From NCBI GenBank assembly GCA_033442325.1, contig JAWQFM010000035.1:591096-655095 (forward strand): a stretch of DNA of 64,000 nucleotides, in the 5' to 3' direction. This document shows positions 36,601 to 62,880 of the stretch, piece by piece. The translations under genes were made by a program, and so were the position numbers. Numbering within the stretch: the stretch's first letter is position 1; each line of letters opens with the position of its first letter. Under the pieces are notes generated by a model. That model was not told the origin of the DNA and did no database searches. It saw only the letters and a list, made by a program, of their open reading frames with translations. This DNA is from Salpingoeca rosetta. Its lineage: Eukaryota; Protista; Choanoflagellata.

Positions 36601-38513
36601 TGGCTCAGTTGCACTCCTTTCAGTTCGATCTCCACCCCTGGTTGCCTTTGAGTGTGTGACTTGCTTTGTGAAGGACATCTCACCCACTCCACTCCACGCA
36701 TCACACGTGCTCCTTCCTTCCTTCCTTCCTTCCTTCCTTCCTTTCTTCGTTTTGCGGTTGCTTGTGCCAGAAAACCACCCCAACATTGTGCAACTGCAGG
36801 GCGTCATGATGCAAGCGCATCCGCTTGCTGTTGTCATTGAATTCCTCAGCAACGGCTCCCTTCGCTCCCTTCTTCTCGACACACGCGCGAGGCACCCGTA
36901 AGTTGCGGCACTCGGTGCTTGCTTGCGTGCTTGTTTGTGTGTATACGTGTGTGTGTGTGTGTGCGGTGTGCGTGTGTTGGACATGTGATCCTTGTGTGAC
37001 ACGTATGTGTGTGTGTGTGTGTTTGAAATGACTTCATGTACACTCATTAGTTGCTCGCCCCACCCCACCCCCTCCTCTCCCCATTCCCAGCGTGTTTCTT
37101 GATCTGCACCAGCTGCTGCTGTTTACACTGGACATTGTTGAGGGCATGTGCTTCGTCACCAGCAAAGGCGTCATCCACCGTGACCTCGCAGGTGTGTGAT
37201 ATCTGTGAGTGTGTGTGAGTGTGTGTGTGCGAGAGAGAGAGTGTGTGTGTGTGTGTGTGCGTGTGTGTGCGCGTGTGTGTGCGCGTGTGTGTGCGCGAGA
37301 GAGAGAGAGTGTGTGTGTGTGTGTGTGTGTGTGTCTGTGTGTGTGTGTGAGTGTGTGTGAGTGTGTGCAATGGGCGGGGGCGTTGGTTGTTCGCTGTTTT
37401 TTATTTGTAGGATGGCACTGTGGTCACTGAATGGTTGATACCAGCCATCACTTCTTCCGCATCGCGTGTGATTCTCTCCACAACTCAACATCCGCTCACA
37501 CACACGCACAACGCACACAACACATATACACCCCCCTCCCAAACACCGTGCAGCGCGCAACTGTCTGGTGACCACGGACTGGACGGTGAAGATTGCAGAC
37601 TTTGGGTTTGCGCGTGCGCCCTTGCTCGAACGCAACTACCAGGCCATGTACACGAAGCGCGGTGATGTTGTGCTGCCGCTGCGATGGGTTGCGCCGGAGG
37701 TGTTCACGGACGGCCGATTCTGCGAACTGTCAGACGTGTGGTCGTTTGGCGTCACCATGTGGGAAATCTTCGCAAAGGGAGAGGTGAGCAGCTGTCGGGT
37801 TAGAGAGAGAGAGAGAGAGCGTGTGTGTGTGTGTGTGCGTGTGTGTGTGTACATGTGTGTGAATATGCGAGTGTGTGTGTGTGTGTTTGTATTTTGTGTG
37901 TGTTAGTGTGTTAGTGTGTTTGTATTTTGTGTGTGTTAGTGTGTTAGTGTGTTTGTGTTTTGTGTGTGTGTGTGTGAGCGTGTTTGTGTTTTGTGTGTGT
38001 GTGTGTGTGTGCTCGCGTCTGTCTTCACTTGTTTTGCAAGCACTTGACTTCCGCTGCTCACCTCGCCATTTACATTCACGAACAACAACAACCCCCCCTG
38101 TCACCTACGACACCTCTCCCCCTCTTCCCTTTCTTCCCCCACATCAGCTGCCGTATGCAGACATTCCTCAGGAGAAGCTCGTCTCGCAGATATTGTCTGG
38201 TCGCCGCCTGCACCAGCCCGACGACTGCCCGCGCCTCCTCTACATGCTCATGCAGCGCTGCTGGGAACGGTAAGCACGCCACGGTGCTGTGGTGTGGTGT
38301 GGTTGTGTTGCATTGTTGTTGCTGTTGTGTTGCATTGTAATCGTGTTGCTTCTTGGTTTCTTGGTGTAAGCCATGATGCGCGTCGCTTCTTGGTTTCTTG
38401 CGTCCCACATCCTCTGCTGTTCATCTCTCTTGCTCTCCCGTCCCTTTCACCCACCGCCCAACGGTTTCTCATCACCCACGCTCTTGCTGTCGCCCACTCA
38501 CCATGCCCCGCCC

Positions 38514-38608
<95 letters not shown>

Positions 38609-39203
38609 AACAACAACAAAAACAACAATAACAACAAAAACAACAACGACGACGACGACGACGACGACCACCACCACCACCACCACAGGGACCGCCCAAG
38701 CTTCAGCGCCATCAGAACGTTTATCCTGAAGGCGATTGCCAAGTTTGGCCTGTCGACGATGGAAGGGGAACGAACACACCCTGAATCGCGCATGGGTATT
38801 GCCCGCACGCCCCACGGCAGCCACGCCCACACGAGTGGCGGCAGCACCGACAGCGGCACGACGGCCGGTGGCGTCATTACAACACGCCATCGCGGCAGTG
38901 CCAAGGAGGATGGATGTGGTGGTGGCGGTTATGACGATGCTGTGACGAGCACCACCGCTCTCACGCTGGCGTCGCTGCTGCCAGCCACCACCACAACGAC
39001 AACAACAGCACCAGAAGCACCACTGTCGATGACAAGGATTGGCAGGTGTGGCGATGGGGCTCGGGACAAGGGCATGTCGGTTGGAAGCATCACCCCTGGC
39101 AGCGACACCGCACTTGGGTCGAGTCTCGATGCAGAATTGGCCGAGTGGACAGATATGCTGCTGGACAACGGCATTGATGGCACCTGCCGCACAAGCAGCG
39201 ACC

Positions 39204-39292
<89 letters not shown>

Positions 39293-39379
39293 CGCGGGGA
39301 GGTGCTTGTGCTGTTTAATGAACGCACCGGACAGCAACCCCAACACAAGTCCAACGTCATTGGCAGTAGTGTGGTGTAG
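32970..39379 (+). CDS. Receptor tyrosine kinase with FN3-like ectodomain and low-complexity/polyQ C-tail
   Basis: Start at ATG 32970 or 33105 ([24 protein letters not shown], signal peptide). FN3 signatures [47 protein letters not shown]; [19 protein letters not shown]|VIWRYR; kinase exons [45 protein letters not shown]|[55 protein letters not shown]|DRPSF; ends GSSVV* at 39379. Confidence 0.92.
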
Positions 39380-39939
39380 CATCGCGCTTGTGTGTATGTG
39401 TGCTTGTGGTTTCCGACTGAATCCCTTTGTGGAATGGCGTGGTTCCAGTGCAACGTGGTGTTTTTCGTGTGCGTGTGTAGCGTGTTGCCATGATTATCAC
39501 TATCATAATTAGCGGTTTCTGGTCTGTCTGCAAGCACCCTTGCTTGCGTCAACACTTGCCATTGCTTGTGTTATTTACGTTACATTGTGGTTTTAGTGAC
39601 ACCGTGCCCCTGCGCGTGCATTGACGCGTGTTGTGCACTGTAGAGTTACAGCTTATTCTCTTTCTAGTCATTGCTGTTCACGTCCCTGCTTGCGTTTGTG
39701 TTTTGATTTCACTCACAGTCAAACCCATCACGAGCACAAAAGCAAATGCAACACCAGAAGAAAGCGAAGACAAAGAGAGGGAAACTTTGAAGAGACACAC
39801 AGCCACACTCCCACCCACACACCCACACCCACCCACACGCGCGCGCGCACACACCCACACCCACCCACACGCGCGCGCGCGCACACACACACACACACAC
39901 ACGCACGCACACCCACACGCACACACACACACACACACC

Positions 39940-42900
39940 TCAGCAAGCGTCTGGGCAGTTCTTTGTGGTGACACCAGAACCAACAGCTACGCATGAGCCA
40001 AGACCTTTGCAGTTAAGACGAGTGATGGCAGTGCCAGTTGCGTAAATCTTCTCCTCAATCGACGTGATGGATGCAAAGTCAATGTTACTCAGCGATGTGC
40101 ACGACTGCAGAAGGAGAGAGCCTTTGATCTCCGTGAGGTCACCAAAGTCAAGGTTGGTGAGAGATGGGTTGTTACTCAGGGCAACAAAGCCGCCAACACT
40201 TGTGATGCTTCCGAAGTCAATGCTGGTGAGTTGCTCGTTTTCCTGAAAGTACATGCCGCCACCCACTTGCGTCATGTTCGGGAAGCTCAGGCTGGTGATG
40301 TGGTCGTTGTGCTGGAGGAAAATGTAATCGCCCACGCTGCTGATCATGCTAAAGTCAACCTGGGTCAGCGTTGGAATAGTGAGATCGAGCTTGCCGCCGA
40401 CGCTGCGAAGACGAGCAAACGTGACACTCTGCAGGTTGTTGTCGCTCAGGTCCAGGTCACCACGCACATGCTCGATGAGACCCAAGTCGAGCGTGGTGAT
40501 GCCGACGTTGGCGTGGACACGAAGATCGCCACCCACATGCGTTATCAGGCCAAAGTCAATACTGGTCAGGACGTTGTCGCTGACATCGAGGAAGCCACCG
40601 ATGTAGGTGAGTTTGCTGCCAAACAGGATGGAGGAGAGTTGGTTGACGCTCAAGTCAAGGTCACCGCCAATCAGGGTCAGGTCACGGAAGTTGATGGTGT
40701 GAAGATCAAAGTTGTTTCCAAGATCGAGGCGGCCACCAACATGTGTCACATTGGCGAGGTCGAAGCTGGTGATGCTGTTGTCGTTCAGGACCAGGTCACC
40801 CGTGACAACCGATAGCGCGCCAAGGTCGATGGAGGTATAGCTATTGCCTGCAAGCAGCAGGCTGCCGTTGACATGTGTGAGACGGCCGAAGGAAATGTGC
40901 TCTTGGTTGTTGTCGGGGATGATGCGCAGCGTTGCCCGTGAAGTCACTGGCTGGATATTCTCAAACACAGTCTGGGCAATCGTCAGCACACCAGCAACAG
41001 TGGGCATGCTTGCAAAGTCAACGCTGACCAGCGCTGGGTTGTTGCTGAGGTCAAGGTCGCCAGCCACGAAGGACAGCTTGCCAAAGCGGATGCTGGTGAG
41101 GGCGGGGTTATTGCTGAGGTCAACGCTGCCACCAATGTCAACCACGTTGGCAAAGTCGATGCTGGTCAGGCCGGGGTTGCTGCTGACGTCAACGTTCCGG
41201 CCAATTGAGGTAATGTTACCACAGTGGAGGCTGGTCAGGGCGTTGCTGTTGAGATCGAGGTGGTCTGTCACGGCTGTAAGGCTGCCAAAGTCCACACGCG
41301 TGAGCGCGTTCTGCTGCAGATAGAGGGAAGACACGCTCGTGAGAGCACCCAAGGACAAATTAGTGACGGCGTTGTTGTTCAGGCGAAGATAACCCAAAAC
41401 GCTTGTCAGGGCGGGTATCAGCACGCTTGTGAGCATCGGGTTGTTCTGGAACAGAAAGCTGCCGGTGCGGGTGAGGGAGCGGAGGTCAATGCTCGTGACC
41501 CTGGGATTGTTCCGCAGGAAGATGGTACTGCATGTGCCGAGTGAAGGGAAGCTGACGATGGTAAGCCCAGAGTTGTTGTCAAACTGCAGCTGAGCGGCGC
41601 TGGTGACGTTGCCAAAGCGGATGAACCTGACGCCACTGTAGGCAATCTGCAAATTATCAAGGAGCGCACCGTCCTTGAGGGAGACGCGGTTGGTCCCGAG
41701 TGACAGCCGACCTTGCACGTGTGAGAGCGCTCCAAAGTCAAGCCACTGCATGTTGCCGATGCCCACGTCCCCGCCAACAGTGGCCAGCGCACCAAACCGG
41801 ATGTGGTTGATGGGGTTTCCAGAGAAGTACATGCGGCCCCCCAGGCTTGTGATGGACCCAAAGTCGATGCTAGTGAGCGCTGTGTTGAATTCAAAGTACG
41901 CAATCCCGTCCACACGGGTGAGGTTGCTGCCGGAGAAGTCAAGGCTGGTGAGGGCTCTGTTTGAGACAAAGTACAGCATCCCGCCAACAGTTGACAGGCG
42001 GCTGAAGTTGATGCTTGTCAGGCCCGGGTTGGAATGGATGAGCAGGTCACTCCCAATAGTCTGGATGTTACCAAGGGTGAGCGTGTTGAGGCTGTTCACT
42101 GCGTTGATGCTCACCACCCCGCCCACCGTCGTGAGGAGGCCAAAGTCGATGCTGGTGAGGGAGGGGTTGGACCCAACATTCAGGTCAGCGCCAACACTGC
42201 GCACGGAGGAAAGGTCGAGGACACGCAGGTCGTTGCCGTTCAAGTTGACACCCAGACCCACGTGCGTCAGCGCGCCAAAGTCAATCTCGGTGATGACGTT
42301 GTTGGAGAGGTCGATGCTGGAGGAGACGCTGCGAACACGCTCAAACTGCACAGAGGCCAGCTGGCCGCCCTGTGCCGTGCCGCCCTGCGCCGCGACTGAC
42401 CCGACGGTGGTCACATTTCCAAATGAAAGCGCCTCTGTGGCAGGCGAGACATCCACGACGCCAATGTGCTGCAGACGGGCTGCCTCATCGCAGCAGCAGT
42501 TGTGCACTGTCGTCGCTTCACAGTAGTTGGCGCCGGAGAACCAGCCAACGACGGTGGCGTTGCTACAGTCAAGTGCAAACGGCGCAACGCACGTGGTGGT
42601 GGTGGTCGTTGTGGTGATGGTCGTGCTGGTGGTTGTCGTCGTTGTCTTCGTTGTTGCTGTGGGAGTCGTTATGGTGGTGGTCGTGGTGGTGGCAGTCTTC
42701 GTTGTTGCTGTGGGAGTCGTCGTGGCGCCACCACCGGTACTGCTGCTTGCGCTGATTGCGGGAACAGCAACAAGGGCGACAGGGACGGCGACAGCCGCGG
42801 CCACGAGAGCCGCAACCGCCACGAGCAGCAGCAGTCGGCTGCACGGCCAGCAGCGGCTGCGCTTGACAGCCACATCACTGTCCGCAACTTCAGAGTCGAG

Positions 42901-44315
42901 CAAGCGAAGGTCCTGCAGCATCGGGTTCATGACAAACGACGGCAGACCCTTTGACACGCGGTCGTTGTCCTTGGACGCGTTGCGCTTGGGTGGGGCCGGG
43001 GGTAGGGGCAGGTGTGGGTGGTTCCGGCTGCGTTCGTGCAAGAAGAGGAGACCGGCGTCTGGATCCGAGTACAGAGCCTCTTCTTCTTCCTCTTCCCCAT
43101 CGCTCTGGTGGCTGTTTTCGACGTTGTCGTACAGGGTGGTCTGTGCAAGCGGCACCGCGGGCTGCATATACCCCTCTTCGTGCTGCTGATGCTGCTGCTG
43201 TGGCATGTCGGTGAAGACATTTGCGCTGTTGCCTTCGACGTTGTCGTACAGGGCATTCTGTGCAAGCGGCATCGCGGGCTGCATGTGCTGCTCCTCGTGC
43301 TGCTGCTGATGCTGCTGTGGCATGTCGGTGATGGCGCTTGCCCTGCTGTTGTTGCCGATGTTGTCGCCATCAACGCATGTTTCAGCAACACTTCCGCCTG
43401 TGTCCTTCACCAGCAGAAAGGGCTTTGGCTGCTCGTACACGCGAAATGTGTCGTCGTCACTCTCATCCGCACGCCCAAGATCATACACGTCGTTGCCTTC
43501 CATGTCGACGGTTTCCATCTGCACGGGGCTCTCTCGAATGGCCTACACATGTGTTGTGTTGTGCATGTGATCATGTGTGTATGTGTGGGTGCATGGGTGC
43601 GTGTGCATTAGTATGCGTGTGCATGTGTGCGTGTGTGTGCGTGTGTGTGCATGGGTGCTTGCAGGTGTGCATGGGTACATGGGTGTGTGTGTGCACACAC
43701 TGCATACAATTGATTGGGTGTGCGAGCTTTTGCATGTGTGGATGCGTGGCGGTGTTGTTGAGCAGGGAGAAGCAGACGAAGGACAGATGAGCAGAAAGAA
43801 CAAGCATGCTTGGATTCAAGAATGAACCAGACAATCCACGGTGGCCTCTCTCCTCGCGTTGTCCCTGCCCTCTCGCACTGCTGTGCTCTCACCTCAAGCG
43901 CATCGGCAATCTGCTGCAGGAGCGTGTTCGGGACGCGGATGTCCCTGCCGTCGTCCTCGTCTGGGAACCAGCGGCAGTGGACAGTGTCCTTGGTGAAGTG
44001 GGCCTTTGCACTCGGCACAAGGAGCTTCGTGCACATCTTGATGAGGAAGAACGGCTTGCTTTGCTGGACCATCTGAGACAGTTCGACGCTGGTGTTCCAG
44101 GTACTGGCCGGGTCATCTTGGCCATACATGCTCGTGCCCATGGCGACAACCAAACAGCACTCGCTGAGCGCGGTCTTTGCACTCTCCTTCAGGGCGCCCA
44201 CCGCTCCGCTGGGCCCAAGGAACACGCTCAGGGCACGTCGCTCGAGAGCTGCCTTCAAAGCATGCGCAGCATTGTTGGCCTCGTCCCCTCGGAACGACAC
44301 GTACACATCGAACAT
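39940..44315 (-). CDS. Type II transmembrane receptor: N-terminal TIR-like domain, Tyr motifs and PxxP, TM, Thr stalk, about 35 LRR/receptor-L-like 22-23 aa repeats (2 exons, about 1341 aa)
   Basis: Exon 1 44315-43893 (gccATG; 141 codons; FDVYVSFRGDE..LKAALERRALSVFL..ALSECCLVVAMGTSMYG..WNTSVELSQMVQQSKPFFLI; donor GAG|gtgaga, phase 0). Exon 2 starts at 43542 (tgtag|GCC ATT CGA) in frame with the 1194-aa ORF. TM LLLLVAVAALVAAAVAVPVALVAVPAI 42834-42754, preceded by KRSR. Repeat consensus LTSIDFGxLTxVGGxLxLSNN; many N-glycosylation sequons C-terminal to the TM. Confidence 0.8.
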
Positions 44316-44573
44316 GGCAGTCACGCCGATGCTGGATTCGAGGGCCGTCAATGACAGGCCAACAAGCGCGTGCCGAGGCAACAATGGAAGTGTGGATGAA
44401 GGATGGACAGCAGGCGCCGTGTCGTCGAGTCTGTCACGCGCAACTGTCCAACTGTCGCTTGTTGTTTGTTGGGTGGGCGTGGCTGATTTTGATTTGAGCA
44501 AAATCCGGAAAATACATGCATATCGTCACGAATCGTCGTACGATCAAGTGTGTGTTGTGCATGGTGTGTGCAT

Positions 44574-44656
<83 letters not shown>

Positions 44657-44876
44657 AGACTCACGGCGTTTGGGTTGAAAAAGTTATCAAATACCGCATG
44701 CATGCATGCATGCCACTTTTTCATTTATGGCATGTCGCCAGCACGGCTGGCAGAGTTTTGACATGCGTGTTGTGTTGTGTTGTGTTGTGTTGTGTTGTGT
44801 TGTGTTGTGTTGTGTTGTGTTGTGTTGTGTTGTGTTGTGTTGTGTTGTGTTGTGTTGTGTTGTGTTGTGTTGTGTT

Positions 44877-45279
44877 NNNNNNNNNNNNNNNNNNNNNNNN
44901 NNNNNNNNNNNNNNNNNNNNNNNNNNNNNNNNNNNNNNNNNNNNNNNNNNNNNNNNNNNNNNNNNNNNNNNNNNNNNNNNNNNNNNNNNNNNNNNNNNNN
45001 NNNNNNNNNNNNNNNNNNNNNNNNNNNNNNNNNNNNNNNNNNNNNNNNNNNNNNNNNNNNNNNNNNNNNNNNNNNNNNNNNNNNNNNNNNNNNNNNNNNN
45101 NNNNNNNNNNNNNNNNNNNNNNNNNNNNNNNNNNNNNNNNNNNNNNNNNNNNNNNNNNNNNNNNNNNNNNNNNNNNNNNNNNNNNNNNNNNNNNNNNNNN
45201 NNNNNNNNNNNNNNNNNNNNNNNNNNNNNNNNNNNNNNNNNNNNNNNNNNNNNNNNNNNNNNNNNNNNNNNNNNNNNNN
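44877..45279. other. Assembly gap (N run) flanked by (TTGTG)n
   Basis: Run of n. Other gaps are at 60065-60164 and 62453-62552, inside P450 introns. Confidence 0.99.

Positions 45280-58252: not shown

Positions 58253-62880
<4,628 letters not shown>

Follow-up and report, generated by a model that had tools for sequence, protein, structure and literature searches.

A two-exon gene of the choanoflagellate Salpingoeca rosetta that carries Toll-like receptor parts in the opposite order, with a predicted cytoplasmic TIR domain and a predicted LRR ectodomain

The Toll-like receptors of animals and choanoflagellates are type I proteins in which a signal peptide and an LRR ectodomain precede a single transmembrane (TM) helix and a cytoplasmic TIR domain follows it. 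Choanoflagellate proteins of this LRR-TM-TIR order and 'Kinase TLRs', not proteins of a TIR-TM-LRR order, were described by Richter et al. 2018, and combinations of TIR with SH2 were regarded as intracellular and lacking a membrane helix (PMC6040629). In plant TIR-NB-LRR proteins (Roq1, RPS4, RUN1 and L6), the TIR lies at the N terminus and the LRR at the C terminus, as in the protein described here; however, they are soluble and possess an NB-ARC switch between the two, whereas in our protein a membrane helix separates the TIR from an LRR that is predicted to be extracellular. The TIR NADase SARM1 is likewise soluble and forms an octamer of ARM-SAM-TIR subunits, and neither an ARM nor a SAM domain was found in our protein. 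N-in/C-out sensors are represented by the type II C-type lectin receptors Dectin-1 and CLEC-2, which are known only from vertebrates and have a cytoplasmic hemITAM in a short N-terminal tail, whose acidic tyrosine motifs are read by SH2 proteins; however, their ectodomain fold is unrelated and they contain no TIR. Our literature searches, whose coverage was incomplete, returned no paper describing a TIR-TM-LRR architecture, which is weak evidence of novelty, and equally none on choanoflagellate proteins combining an N-terminal TIR with a transmembrane segment or on SH2 with TIR in Monosiga brevicollis.

The window analysed here is a stretch of 64,000 nucleotides from the S. rosetta contig JAWQFM010000035.1 (assembly GCA_033442325.1). 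A first-pass annotation of its letters had proposed that a CA-rich GT-AG intron of phase 0 (43892-43543) joins a TIR-like open reading frame (ORF) to an LRR ORF. The gene has two exons and lies on the minus strand (44315-39940); its joined ORF encodes 1341 aa with no internal stop (Table 1). Raw reads from three stranded RNA-seq runs were used, and joints were listed when at least three reads supported them. There was a single joint, 43541/43892, which skips 350 nucleotides and has the ends CT..AC, that is, with the cut at +1, GT..AG on the minus strand. It was supported by 6, 17 and 6 reads in the three runs (29 in all, from 3, 12 and 6 start positions), confirming in every run the proposed junction of 43893 with 43542. 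The depth in the intron interior (43620-43774) was essentially zero in all three runs, and nearly all first mates lay on the plus strand, as expected for minus-strand RNA in dUTP-type libraries. The composition was also as proposed, with CA and AC dinucleotides accounting for 34% of the intron vs. 19% of exon 2. The first-pass annotation had noted an alternative acceptor at 43518 as well; the site (CAG before the cut, ATG after it) is present in the sequence and in frame, but no joint to it reached the three-read listing threshold in the three runs, and its use was rejected at the RNA-seq depth reached. Reads extend 5' of the ATG to at least 44520 with no further joint there. No in-frame ATG upstream of 44315 was found in this covered stretch, and the ATGs at 44521 and 44517 lead only to a short uORF.

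Since a raw six-frame view shows two separate ORFs, they might be read as two genes, one for a small TIR-only protein and the other for an LRR membrane protein. This reading is already refuted at the transcript level by the junction reads and the nearly empty intron interior. In addition, read starts did not cluster at the 5' end of exon 2, the depth gradient is biased towards the 3' end in keeping with a single polyadenylated mRNA, and the paralogs described below show this order within single ORFs or within annotated proteins. The probability of two genes is negligible, and exons 1 and 2 are transcribed as one spliced mRNA.

Table 1. Positions in the window of the features of the S. rosetta gene and its product
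Feature	Positions	Strand	Evidence
5' untranslated region	44316..44520 (minimum extent)	-	RNA-seq depth 1.3-8.1 at 44395-44520; fragment-end cluster at 44429
Exon 1, coding part (residues 1-141; TIR domain with E78)	43893..44315	-	423 nt, 141 codons, starts with ATG
Intron, 350 nt, GT-AG (GTGAGA...TGTGTAG), phase 0, CA-rich	43543..43892	-	29 spliced reads; composition
Exon 2, including TGA stop, 1200 codons	43542-39940	-	In frame with exon 1
Predicted cytoplasmic linker (residues 142-375): Q-rich and acidic, with six tyrosines in motif contexts and the basic juxtamembrane sequence VAVKRSRCWPC at its end	42841..43542	-	Composition, Tyr contexts
Tandem duplication of a 39-residue unit (residues 213-291), LYDNVE in each copy	43093..43329	-	Read from translation
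Predicted single transmembrane helix (residues 378-404), family motif AVAVPV	42754..42834	-	Kyte-Doolittle
Thr-rich stalk (residues 405-458), 65% Thr over 54 residues	42592..42753	-	Composition
N-terminal cysteine knot, 6 Cys (residues 459-492), ending NCCC-DE	42490..42591	-	Cys positions
Repeat solenoid (residues ~540-1310), ~33 repeats of 22-23 residues, consensus like LTSIDFGxLTxVGGxL	40036..42348	-	Pfam, periodicity
C-terminal cysteine cap LNCKGLGSC...NCPDAC (Cys 1319, 1325, 1337, 1341)	39943..40035	-	Cys positions
Stop codon TGA	39940..39942	-	RNA coverage runs on to at least 39900

That exon 1 encodes a TIR domain had been proposed from its translation. On its own, exon 1 matched neither Pfam (at E≤1) nor PDB sequences. 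A profile built from exon 1 and 63 relatives matched the Roq1 TIR in the PDB (1.7e-4), followed by RPV1, RUN1 and SARM1, and relatives reach Pfam TIR_2/TIR, with one of them (P0009) passing both cut-offs and others falling just under. A single-sequence AF2 model was unusable (pLDDT 37.8) and was replaced by one based on the alignment of 64 sequences, which gave a pLDDT of 87.8 and a pTM of 0.84. When this model was compared with the PDB by Foldseek, the top 41 matches were all TIR domains (E from 5.7e-5, probability 1.00, TMq 0.55-0.71), including those of SARM1, RPS4, RPV1, RUN1, L6 and TLR1. The proposal is borne out: in the predicted structure, the N-terminal domain has the flavodoxin-like alternating beta-alpha fold of the TIR superfamily, superposable on solved TIRs, and it belongs to a distinct TIR subfamily, which, among the matches whose source was traced, occurs mainly in choanoflagellates. 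The best sequence-profile matches were plant TIR-NB-LRR proteins, with the catalytic glutamate aligned, while the best structural matches were to SARM1 (TMq up to 0.71), which shares the conserved glutamate.

This glutamate, E78, is shared by at least 90% of the 64 family members, sits in a predicted helix (75-84) and aligns in the profile alignment with Roq1 residue 86, which we take to be the catalytic glutamate. The alignment and the predicted helix thus place E78 where enzymatic TIRs carry their catalytic glutamate, on helix alpha-C. The TIR of this gene also keeps the invariant residues S7, E12, L24, Y64, G65 and W116 and the near-invariant residues R9, F32, T75, P88, L91, K93, M94 and C95 as well as E78 itself, and differs from the family at the near-invariant positions 5, 39 and 68. 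In a quick tree of 30 S. rosetta copies, it forms a long branch of 1.83 changes per column, the longest among the TM-linked TIRs. Because of this branch and the missing Pfam TIR match at E≤1, the domain could be a degenerate, non-catalytic copy. As a decayed pseudo-enzyme, it would leave signalling to phosphotyrosine motifs only, or the protein would serve as a decoy or co-receptor for SH2-bearing paralogs; the three departures point the same way, as does the lack of the SH2 domain that four paralogs possess, in place of which this gene has the duplicated YDNV unit. We consider this distinctly unlikely, since the invariant and near-invariant residues, including E78, are kept and the AF2 model has high confidence throughout the domain. 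A prediction of self-association with two copies of the TIR scored 0.28 against a mark of 0.32, which speaks neither for nor against it. A passage of a preprint (10.64898/2026.04.20.719644) states that an S. rosetta TIR, in a protein it does not name, produces cADPR, and that in the animal TIRs assayed the activity depended on the catalytic glutamate.

A single transmembrane segment without a signal peptide had also been claimed, with basic residues and CWPC on its N side and a Thr stalk and many sequons on its C side. Our analysis agreed on every point. First, the N terminus is not hydrophobic, and all of the top 15 Kyte-Doolittle windows of 19 residues (means 2.2-2.9) fall in one region at approximately residues 378-404. 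Second, the 15-residue flanks of the helix contain three K/R on the N side, together with the CWPC motif, vs. none on the C side. Third, 11 of the 14 N-x-S/T sequons are C-terminal to the helix, on the side of the Thr-rich stalk. The protein thus shows the sequence features of a type II protein, in that it lacks a cleavable signal peptide and has one internal helix with a more positive N-flank. Neither an SH2 nor any other Pfam domain was found in the linker, whose motifs VYDLGRADE and YSDPDAG recur in the paralogs PTSG_02597 and C10; the juxtamembrane V-K-[RH]-x-x-x-W motif recurs in paralogs, and Thr-type stalks likewise follow the helix in PTSG_03080 and C10. SH2 domains are strictly cytoplasmic, and their position on the TIR side of the helix in paralogs supports a cytoplasmic TIR side. 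The N-in/C-out assignment rests on sequence rules, and one might suppose instead that the LRR solenoid is cytoplasmic or that the hydrophobic segment does not span the membrane. This is very improbable, as the positive-inside rule, the stalk, the paired Cys caps and the sequons on the C side all argue against it, as do the TIR (and, in paralogs, SH2) on the N side and the 27-residue length of the hydrophobic core. A type II N-in/C-out topology, in which the TIR and linker would lie inside and the stalk and solenoid outside, is therefore a well-supported prediction.

The claimed C-terminal LRR ectodomain also stood. The solenoid passed the gathering scores of Pfam LRR_5 (1.5e-14, 54.4 bits vs. 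a cut-off of 27.7) and Recep_L_domain (1.3e-11, 45 bits vs. 21.8); LRR_4 was borderline and below its cut-off (25.1 vs. 27), and no Pfam match to LRR_1, LRR_8, LRRNT or LRRCT was listed for it. The repeat autocorrelation peaks at 23 and 22. The ectodomain contains 13 Cys in terminal clusters and 11 sequons, and it gave no match to PDB sequences. Its knot motif (NCCCDE/NCCCEE) and its cap (LxCxGxGxC...NCP) are common to PTSG_02597, PTSG_03080 and Microstomoeca roanoka P0173. By its Pfam matches and repeat periodicity, the ectodomain is a solenoid of the LRR_5/Receptor-L type, and it is framed by cysteine caps. With Toll-like receptors, the protein shares an LRR ectodomain, a TIR fold predicted to be cytoplasmic and a single helix between the two (378-404). 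However, the order and topology are reversed, with the TIR at residues 1-141 and the repeats after the helix, and there is no signal peptide; the solenoid is not of the LRR_1/4/8 families, the Cys caps are its own, and the TIR is of another subfamily. No Pkinase match was found in either exon product, so that the kinase domain of a 'Kinase TLR' or 'Kinase TIR' was not detected.

Relatives of the ectodomain carry Recep_L, LRR_5 and PF23952 (named LRR_EndoS in the Atlas). Among the matches scored, the closest were bacterial surface proteins of the BspA-type LRR/Receptor-L kind, which share the same Pfam families and 25-33% identity over up to 87% of the ectodomain; however, they carry Big_2, PKD or Por/T9SS sorting domains (the last by precomputed Pfam domain) and possess no TIR, helix, Thr stalk or choanoflagellate Cys caps. 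This bacterial likeness says nothing about the ligand of the ectodomain. It does bear on another reading of the same architecture, in which the protein is a surface molecule for adhesion, prey capture or self-recognition and its TIR is a protein-protein scaffold only. Solenoids of the LRR_5/BspA or Receptor-L type that carry mucin-like stalks are a typical feature of adhesins and surface proteins, several of the bacterial relatives have a C-terminal Por/T9SS sorting domain, and many genes with LRR_5-type ectodomains are present in the S. rosetta genome. We regard this reading as rather unlikely, because the retained E78, the conserved cytoplasmic tyrosine motifs and the SH2 domains of paralogs point to signalling beyond anchoring, although adhesion and signalling are not mutually exclusive.

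To place the gene in its family, we defined a cassette consisting of a TIR of the ISLRF...YG...FSTxxEL...KPFFLVKMC subfamily, then V-K-[RH]-x-x-x-W and then an AVAVP helix. The S. rosetta genome contains 38 TIRs of this subfamily, and the motif and helix were found within 1.5 kb downstream at seven of these loci, namely this gene (locus L030) and six others, where the cassette precedes predicted extracellular domains; as the census covered only that distance, seven is a lower bound. At C8, C9, C10, C30 and this gene, LRR matches follow downstream on the same strand. The same TIR subfamily also occurs in fusions with ARM, Roc-COR, WD40, MORN and helicase modules. Two paralogs, PTSG_03080 (XP_004995670, 860 aa) and PTSG_02597 (XP_004996095, 728 aa), are public as 'uncharacterized' proteins. 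Their N-terminal TIRs are of the same subfamily and 36-37% identical to that of this gene, and they share with it V-K-[RH]-x-x-x-W, the AVAVP helix, the NCCC-[DE]E knot, LTSIDFG-type repeats and the LxCxGxGxC...NCP cap. However, they carry an SH2 between the TIR and the helix and far shorter solenoids, while this gene lacks an SH2 and has a duplicated YDNV unit and approximately 33 repeats. Protein homology searches with exon 2, the ectodomain and the cytoplasmic part of PTSG_03080, in which the 8000 candidates sharing most words were scored, returned neither this protein nor the known paralogs and allow no inference on annotation or orthologs. By these sequence features, the gene belongs to a family of paralogs that comprises seven or more S. 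rosetta genes. The first-pass annotation had called the receptor independently assembled. As a singular invention this does not hold, given the seven or more loci and the two paralogs already public; independent assembly itself appears reasonable, because the TIR is of a distinct subfamily with other fusions and the repeats are of the LRR_5/Receptor-L type and not of the common LRR families. The quick tree was mostly unresolved, with this copy on a long branch, and favours neither one origin of the membrane-linked TIRs nor several.

The architecture first proposed, TIR-TM-LRR in one protein, was upheld by the single mRNA, the TIR fold, the positive-inside helix, the stalk, the sequons and the LRR/L-domain solenoid with its Cys caps. 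Our favoured explanation, to which we assign a probability of roughly 0.6, is that the gene encodes a 1341-residue type II single-pass receptor whose TIR and tyrosine-bearing linker signal from the cytoplasm upon binding of an extracellular ligand. In this scenario, a bacterial, prey, matrix or conspecific ligand would bind the ectodomain and cluster the receptor, bringing the TIR domains together; once assembled, these might serve as a scaffold or as enzymes that cleave NAD+ and yield a signalling nucleotide, for example cADPR. Phosphorylation of the linker tyrosines (in YDNV, which is present twice, and in YEQP, YSDP and VYDLGRADE), whose motifs we putatively assign to SH2 classes from published specificities, could recruit SH2 proteins, possibly including the SH2-bearing paralogs. 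A role as a pattern-recognition receptor or bacterial-cue sensor is conjecture.

This gene is built from the parts of a Toll-like receptor arranged in reverse. It is possible, if doubtful, that its family comprises ligand-gated transmembrane TIR enzymes, in which an extracellular LRR solenoid, in type II orientation, would control across the membrane a cytoplasmic TIR that makes an NAD+-derived messenger and is also wired to phosphotyrosine/SH2 signalling; such a family would represent a solution to Toll-like sensing reached in parallel and independently in a close relative of animals, and a set of candidate bacterial-cue receptors of S. rosetta. A transcribed family of several genes with an enzyme-type TIR and phosphotyrosine modules at the cytoplasmic N terminus of a type II LRR receptor would mean that the idea of a TIR-plus-LRR sensor was assembled more than once in this lineage; TIR signalling would be linked to tyrosine-kinase signalling, and the genes, being accessible to CRISPR, would offer concrete candidates for receptors of cues or pathogens. 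Should the TIR be catalytic, NAD+-derived signalling would be gated directly by an extracellular domain.

In the six-frame view, the studied minus-strand gene (44315-39940, within C35:591096-655095) appears as two separate ORFs of 297 aa (containing MFDVYVSFRGDE) and 1194 aa, which the first-pass annotation had proposed to be joined in frame by a CA-rich GT-AG intron at 43892-43543. The genomic reading across this intron is ...GCGCTTGAG|GTGAGAGC...TGTGTAG|GCCATTCGA..., and joining 43893 to 43542 produces a 4026-nt ORF in which 1341 codons precede the stop. Raw reads from three stranded RNA-seq runs were aligned to 39900-44520, and the sole RNA-supported joint in this region was 43541/43892, which skips 350 nt; its ends are CT..AC, and a cut shifted by one gives GT..AG on the minus strand. 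The joint was carried by 6, 17 and 6 reads per run (3, 12 and 6 start positions), the intron interior (43620-43774) had essentially zero depth in all three runs, and CA/AC dinucleotides accounted for 34% of the intron vs 19% of exon 2. The proposed intron was thus borne out by 29 spliced reads, an empty interior and an open frame. The alternative acceptor at 43518 is indeed in frame, but no joint in the three runs supported it. First mates fell almost entirely on the + strand, consistent with a minus-strand transcript sequenced from a dUTP-type library, and depth climbed from exon 1 towards the 3' end, the gradient that one polyadenylated mRNA should show. Coverage reached at least 44520 upstream of the ATG with neither a further splice joint nor an in-frame ATG up to that position; therefore, the TIR starts at residue 2 and no signal peptide precedes it, as had been claimed. 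These results showed a real gene that is expressed and spliced correctly.

Some further features of the region were observed. Immediately 5' of the gene, the sequence contains a long (CA)n microsatellite, a tandem repeat of 15 bp (in one frame, repeated CCVVL) and an assembly gap, so that the promoter region is incomplete in this assembly; other N gaps occur at 60065-60164 and 62453-62552. Four reads of RNA-seq run X23 contained a joint going back 75 inside the repeat encoding the Thr stalk (42597-42671), and contigs of run X1 broke around 42590-43320, which suggests repeat-length variation or mis-alignment in Thr/Gln-coding repeats. Sequencing errors, strain variants or paralog cross-mapping may account for low-frequency differences seen in single runs with 3-4 reads each (40667, 40882, 41059, 41655 and 42490) and for a 1-base deletion at 41968 in X23. 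Downstream of the 3' end, a + strand ORF (38294-39379, 361 aa) contains long poly-Asn, poly-His/Asp, poly-Thr and poly-Gln runs and may be either a genuine gene of low complexity or codon-repeat DNA.

Features of the studied protein and gene, and loci of its S. rosetta paralogs
Feature	Location	Details
Linker	residues 142-375	acidic (18% D+E), Q-rich, no Pfam domain
Y161	linker	VYDLGRADE
Y177	linker	YEQP
Y240, Y279	linker, inside tandemly duplicated 39-residue unit	YDNV twice
Y266	linker	YMQP
Y299	linker	YSDPDAG
Juxtamembrane motif	before residue 378	VAVKRSRCWPC; 3 K/R in the 15 residues ahead of the helix
Hydrophobic core	residues 378-404	contains AVAVPV
C-side flank of helix	after residue 404	0 K/R in next 15 residues
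Stalk	residues 405-458	65% Thr
Six-Cys knot	residues 459-492	ends NCCC-DE
Repeat region	residues about 540-1310	period 22-23
Four-Cys cap	residues 1311-1341	LNCKGLGSC...NCPDAC
Repeat stretches upstream of 5' end	window 44560-44650 and about 44770-44876	
N gap just upstream of 5' end	window 44877-45279	403 bases
PTSG_02597, cassette locus	C4:552880	cassette from its protein sequence; TIR, SH2, helix, NCCCDE knot, LTSIDFG repeats, Cys cap
PTSG_03080, cassette locus	C8	TIR, SH2, helix, NCCCDE knot, LTSIDFG repeats, Cys cap, Thr stalk
PTSG_02868, cassette locus	C4:1718153	TIR, helix, then beta-propeller-like DUF5074 ectodomain
Cassette locus	C9:1044877	
Cassette locus	C30:546081	
Cassette locus	C10:914040	
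Cassette locus	studied gene	

The exon 1 product alone had no Pfam match at E<=1 and retrieved nothing relevant among PDB sequences; its single-sequence AF2 model was poor (pLDDT 37.8) and was set aside. When 1.84 billion representatives were searched exhaustively with HMMER, 270 relatives scored E<=0.001; the best reached 6.8e-18, and identity was at most 42%. All ten relatives scanned against Pfam carried TIR_2 and/or TIR on the homologous stretch, mostly just below the cut-offs, and one of them, P0009, exceeded both (30.9 vs 28 and 22.4 vs 21.3). In an alignment of 64 sequences of this family, S7, E12, L24, Y64, G65 and W116 were invariant, and the near-invariant positions included E78 and the KPFFLVKMC strand. 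The alignment profile matched the TIR domains of Roq1 (1.7e-4), RPV1, RUN1 and SARM1, and it aligned E78 with the second E in the CLEEL of Roq1 (residue 86), where plant TIRs have their catalytic glutamate. With the alignment as input, AF2 returned a model of alternating strands and helices (pLDDT 87.8, pTM 0.84), and its first 41 Foldseek matches in the PDB were TIR domains only (E from 5.7e-5, TMq 0.55-0.71), including SARM1, RPS4/RRS1, RPV1, RUN1, L6, L7, TIR-STING and TLR1. As far as prediction can establish it, exon 1 encodes the TIR fold that had been claimed for it, and the conserved E78 suggests catalytic competence. According to a 2026 preprint, a TIR from S. rosetta produced cADPR, and the activity of the animal TIRs examined in the same work depended on the catalytic glutamate (10.64898/2026.04.20.719644).

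Both the basic residues and CWPC motif described on the N-side of the single membrane helix and the Thr stalk and many sequons described on its C-side were recovered, with 11 of 14 sequons in the C-terminal part. The protein has no signal peptide, its charges follow the positive-inside rule, and it carries a mucin-like stalk and cysteine caps; from these four sequence features, we infer a type II (N-in/C-out) topology. In the paralogs, the SH2 domain sits on the TIR side. The linker carries six tyrosines. The repeats matched LRR_5 (1.5e-14) and Recep_L_domain (1.3e-11), both above the Pfam cut-offs. Beyond choanoflagellates, the ectodomain finds its relatives chiefly among bacterial surface proteins (25-33% identity) that carry Recep_L, LRR_5 and PF23952 (LRR_EndoS) domains; several of them also have Big_2, PKD or a Por/T9SS C-terminal sorting domain. 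These relatives reveal the class of the repeats, but neither ligand nor origin.

Three public S. rosetta proteins, all annotated as 'uncharacterized', were among the TIR relatives (PTSG_02597, PTSG_03080 and PTSG_02868), and the protein encoded at the C8 locus is 100% identical to PTSG_03080, which identifies the source of the assembly as S. rosetta. A profile search of the 55.4-Mb, 68-contig S. rosetta assembly identified 38 TIRs of the exon 1 subfamily. At seven loci, the 1.5 kb that follow the TIR encode a cassette of basic V-K-[RH]-x-x-x-W and then a helix with AVAVP[VIL]; seven is a lower bound, the census having covered this distance at each TIR. LRR_5-type matches followed on the same strand at C8, C9, C10, C30 and the studied gene. 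The reversed TIR-helix-LRR architecture is well supported. An SH2 domain follows the TIR at C4:552880, C8, C9 and C14:1321125, unlike in the studied gene, where none was found after the TIR. The tyrosine motifs VYD[LV]GRADE and Y[SA][DC]PDA are common to the studied gene and PTSG_02597, and the C10 gene has a corresponding YDTPDPG. In a quick TIR tree, four membrane-linked copies and the C14 TIR-SH2 gene grouped with support of 96; the studied TIR formed a long branch whose placement lacked resolution. The studied gene, which has no SH2 and a divergent TIR, belongs to an S. rosetta family with at least seven members. Two giant paralogs were also observed: C10:905918-915917 (L033) includes a single open frame of 2367 aa with a TIR, a helix, a Thr/Ser stalk, many LRR_5 repeats and a linker with Y[DE]x..GDFxVYG three times, and C9:1036764-1046763 (L026) combines TIR-SH2-helix with a 1813-aa LRR open frame.

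In the sister species Microstomoeca roanoka, P0173 (EP00043_P017059) has the order SH2, helix, NCCCDE knot, LRR and Cys cap, and its assembled transcript ORF, marked complete, contains no TIR; that species therefore has the scaffold of the type II LRR receptor combined with SH2 only. The TIR subfamily is also present in Choanoeca flexa and Hartaetosiga gracilis. Its fusion partners elsewhere are ARM, Roc-COR, Ras, WD40, MORN, NHL and SecA-like helicase modules. Such fusions in S. rosetta involve a SecA/DEAD-like helicase (PTSG_06287) and LRR_6-Roc-COR (PTSG_12838). In P0064, a public metagenome protein, the TIR lies at the C-terminus after NHL, Laminin_G_3 and ephrin-receptor-like domains, an order opposite to that of the N-terminal TIR studied here.

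Toll-like receptors are defined by an order and topology that the studied gene does not share, and its repeats, like its TIR, come from other subfamilies; by analogy, it would be TLR-like in concept, but it is not a TLR member. Its nearest functional analogues are plant TNLs, which combine an enzymatic N-terminal TIR with a C-terminal LRR but are soluble, SARM1, which is the best structural match to the TIR, and type II C-type lectin receptors with their N-terminal tyrosine motifs. According to Richter et al. (2018), LRR-TM-TIR is found only in choanozoans, Kinase TLRs and Kinase TIRs are specific to choanoflagellates, and SH2 is one of the domains linked to intracellular TIR proteins without a membrane helix; the TIR-helix-LRR order is absent from that study (PMC6040629), and full-text literature searches found no description of it.

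The established parts are one mRNA, a TIR fold with a conserved glutamate, one helix, an LRR_5/L-domain solenoid and paralogs with a conserved cytoplasmic cassette. In the mechanism that we propose, the protein would be oriented N-in/C-out, and ligand-induced clustering of the ectodomain would bring the TIR domains together, whose output might be NAD+-derived nucleotides or TIR scaffolding. In parallel, phosphorylated linker tyrosines could engage SH2 proteins; the YxNx and YxxP patterns are similar to SH2 motifs published as Grb2-type and Crk-type. Since the studied gene lacks the SH2 of four paralogs, one may speculate that those paralogs have its product as a substrate or partner. For this S. 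rosetta gene, an immune or cue-sensing function would be a candidate role only.
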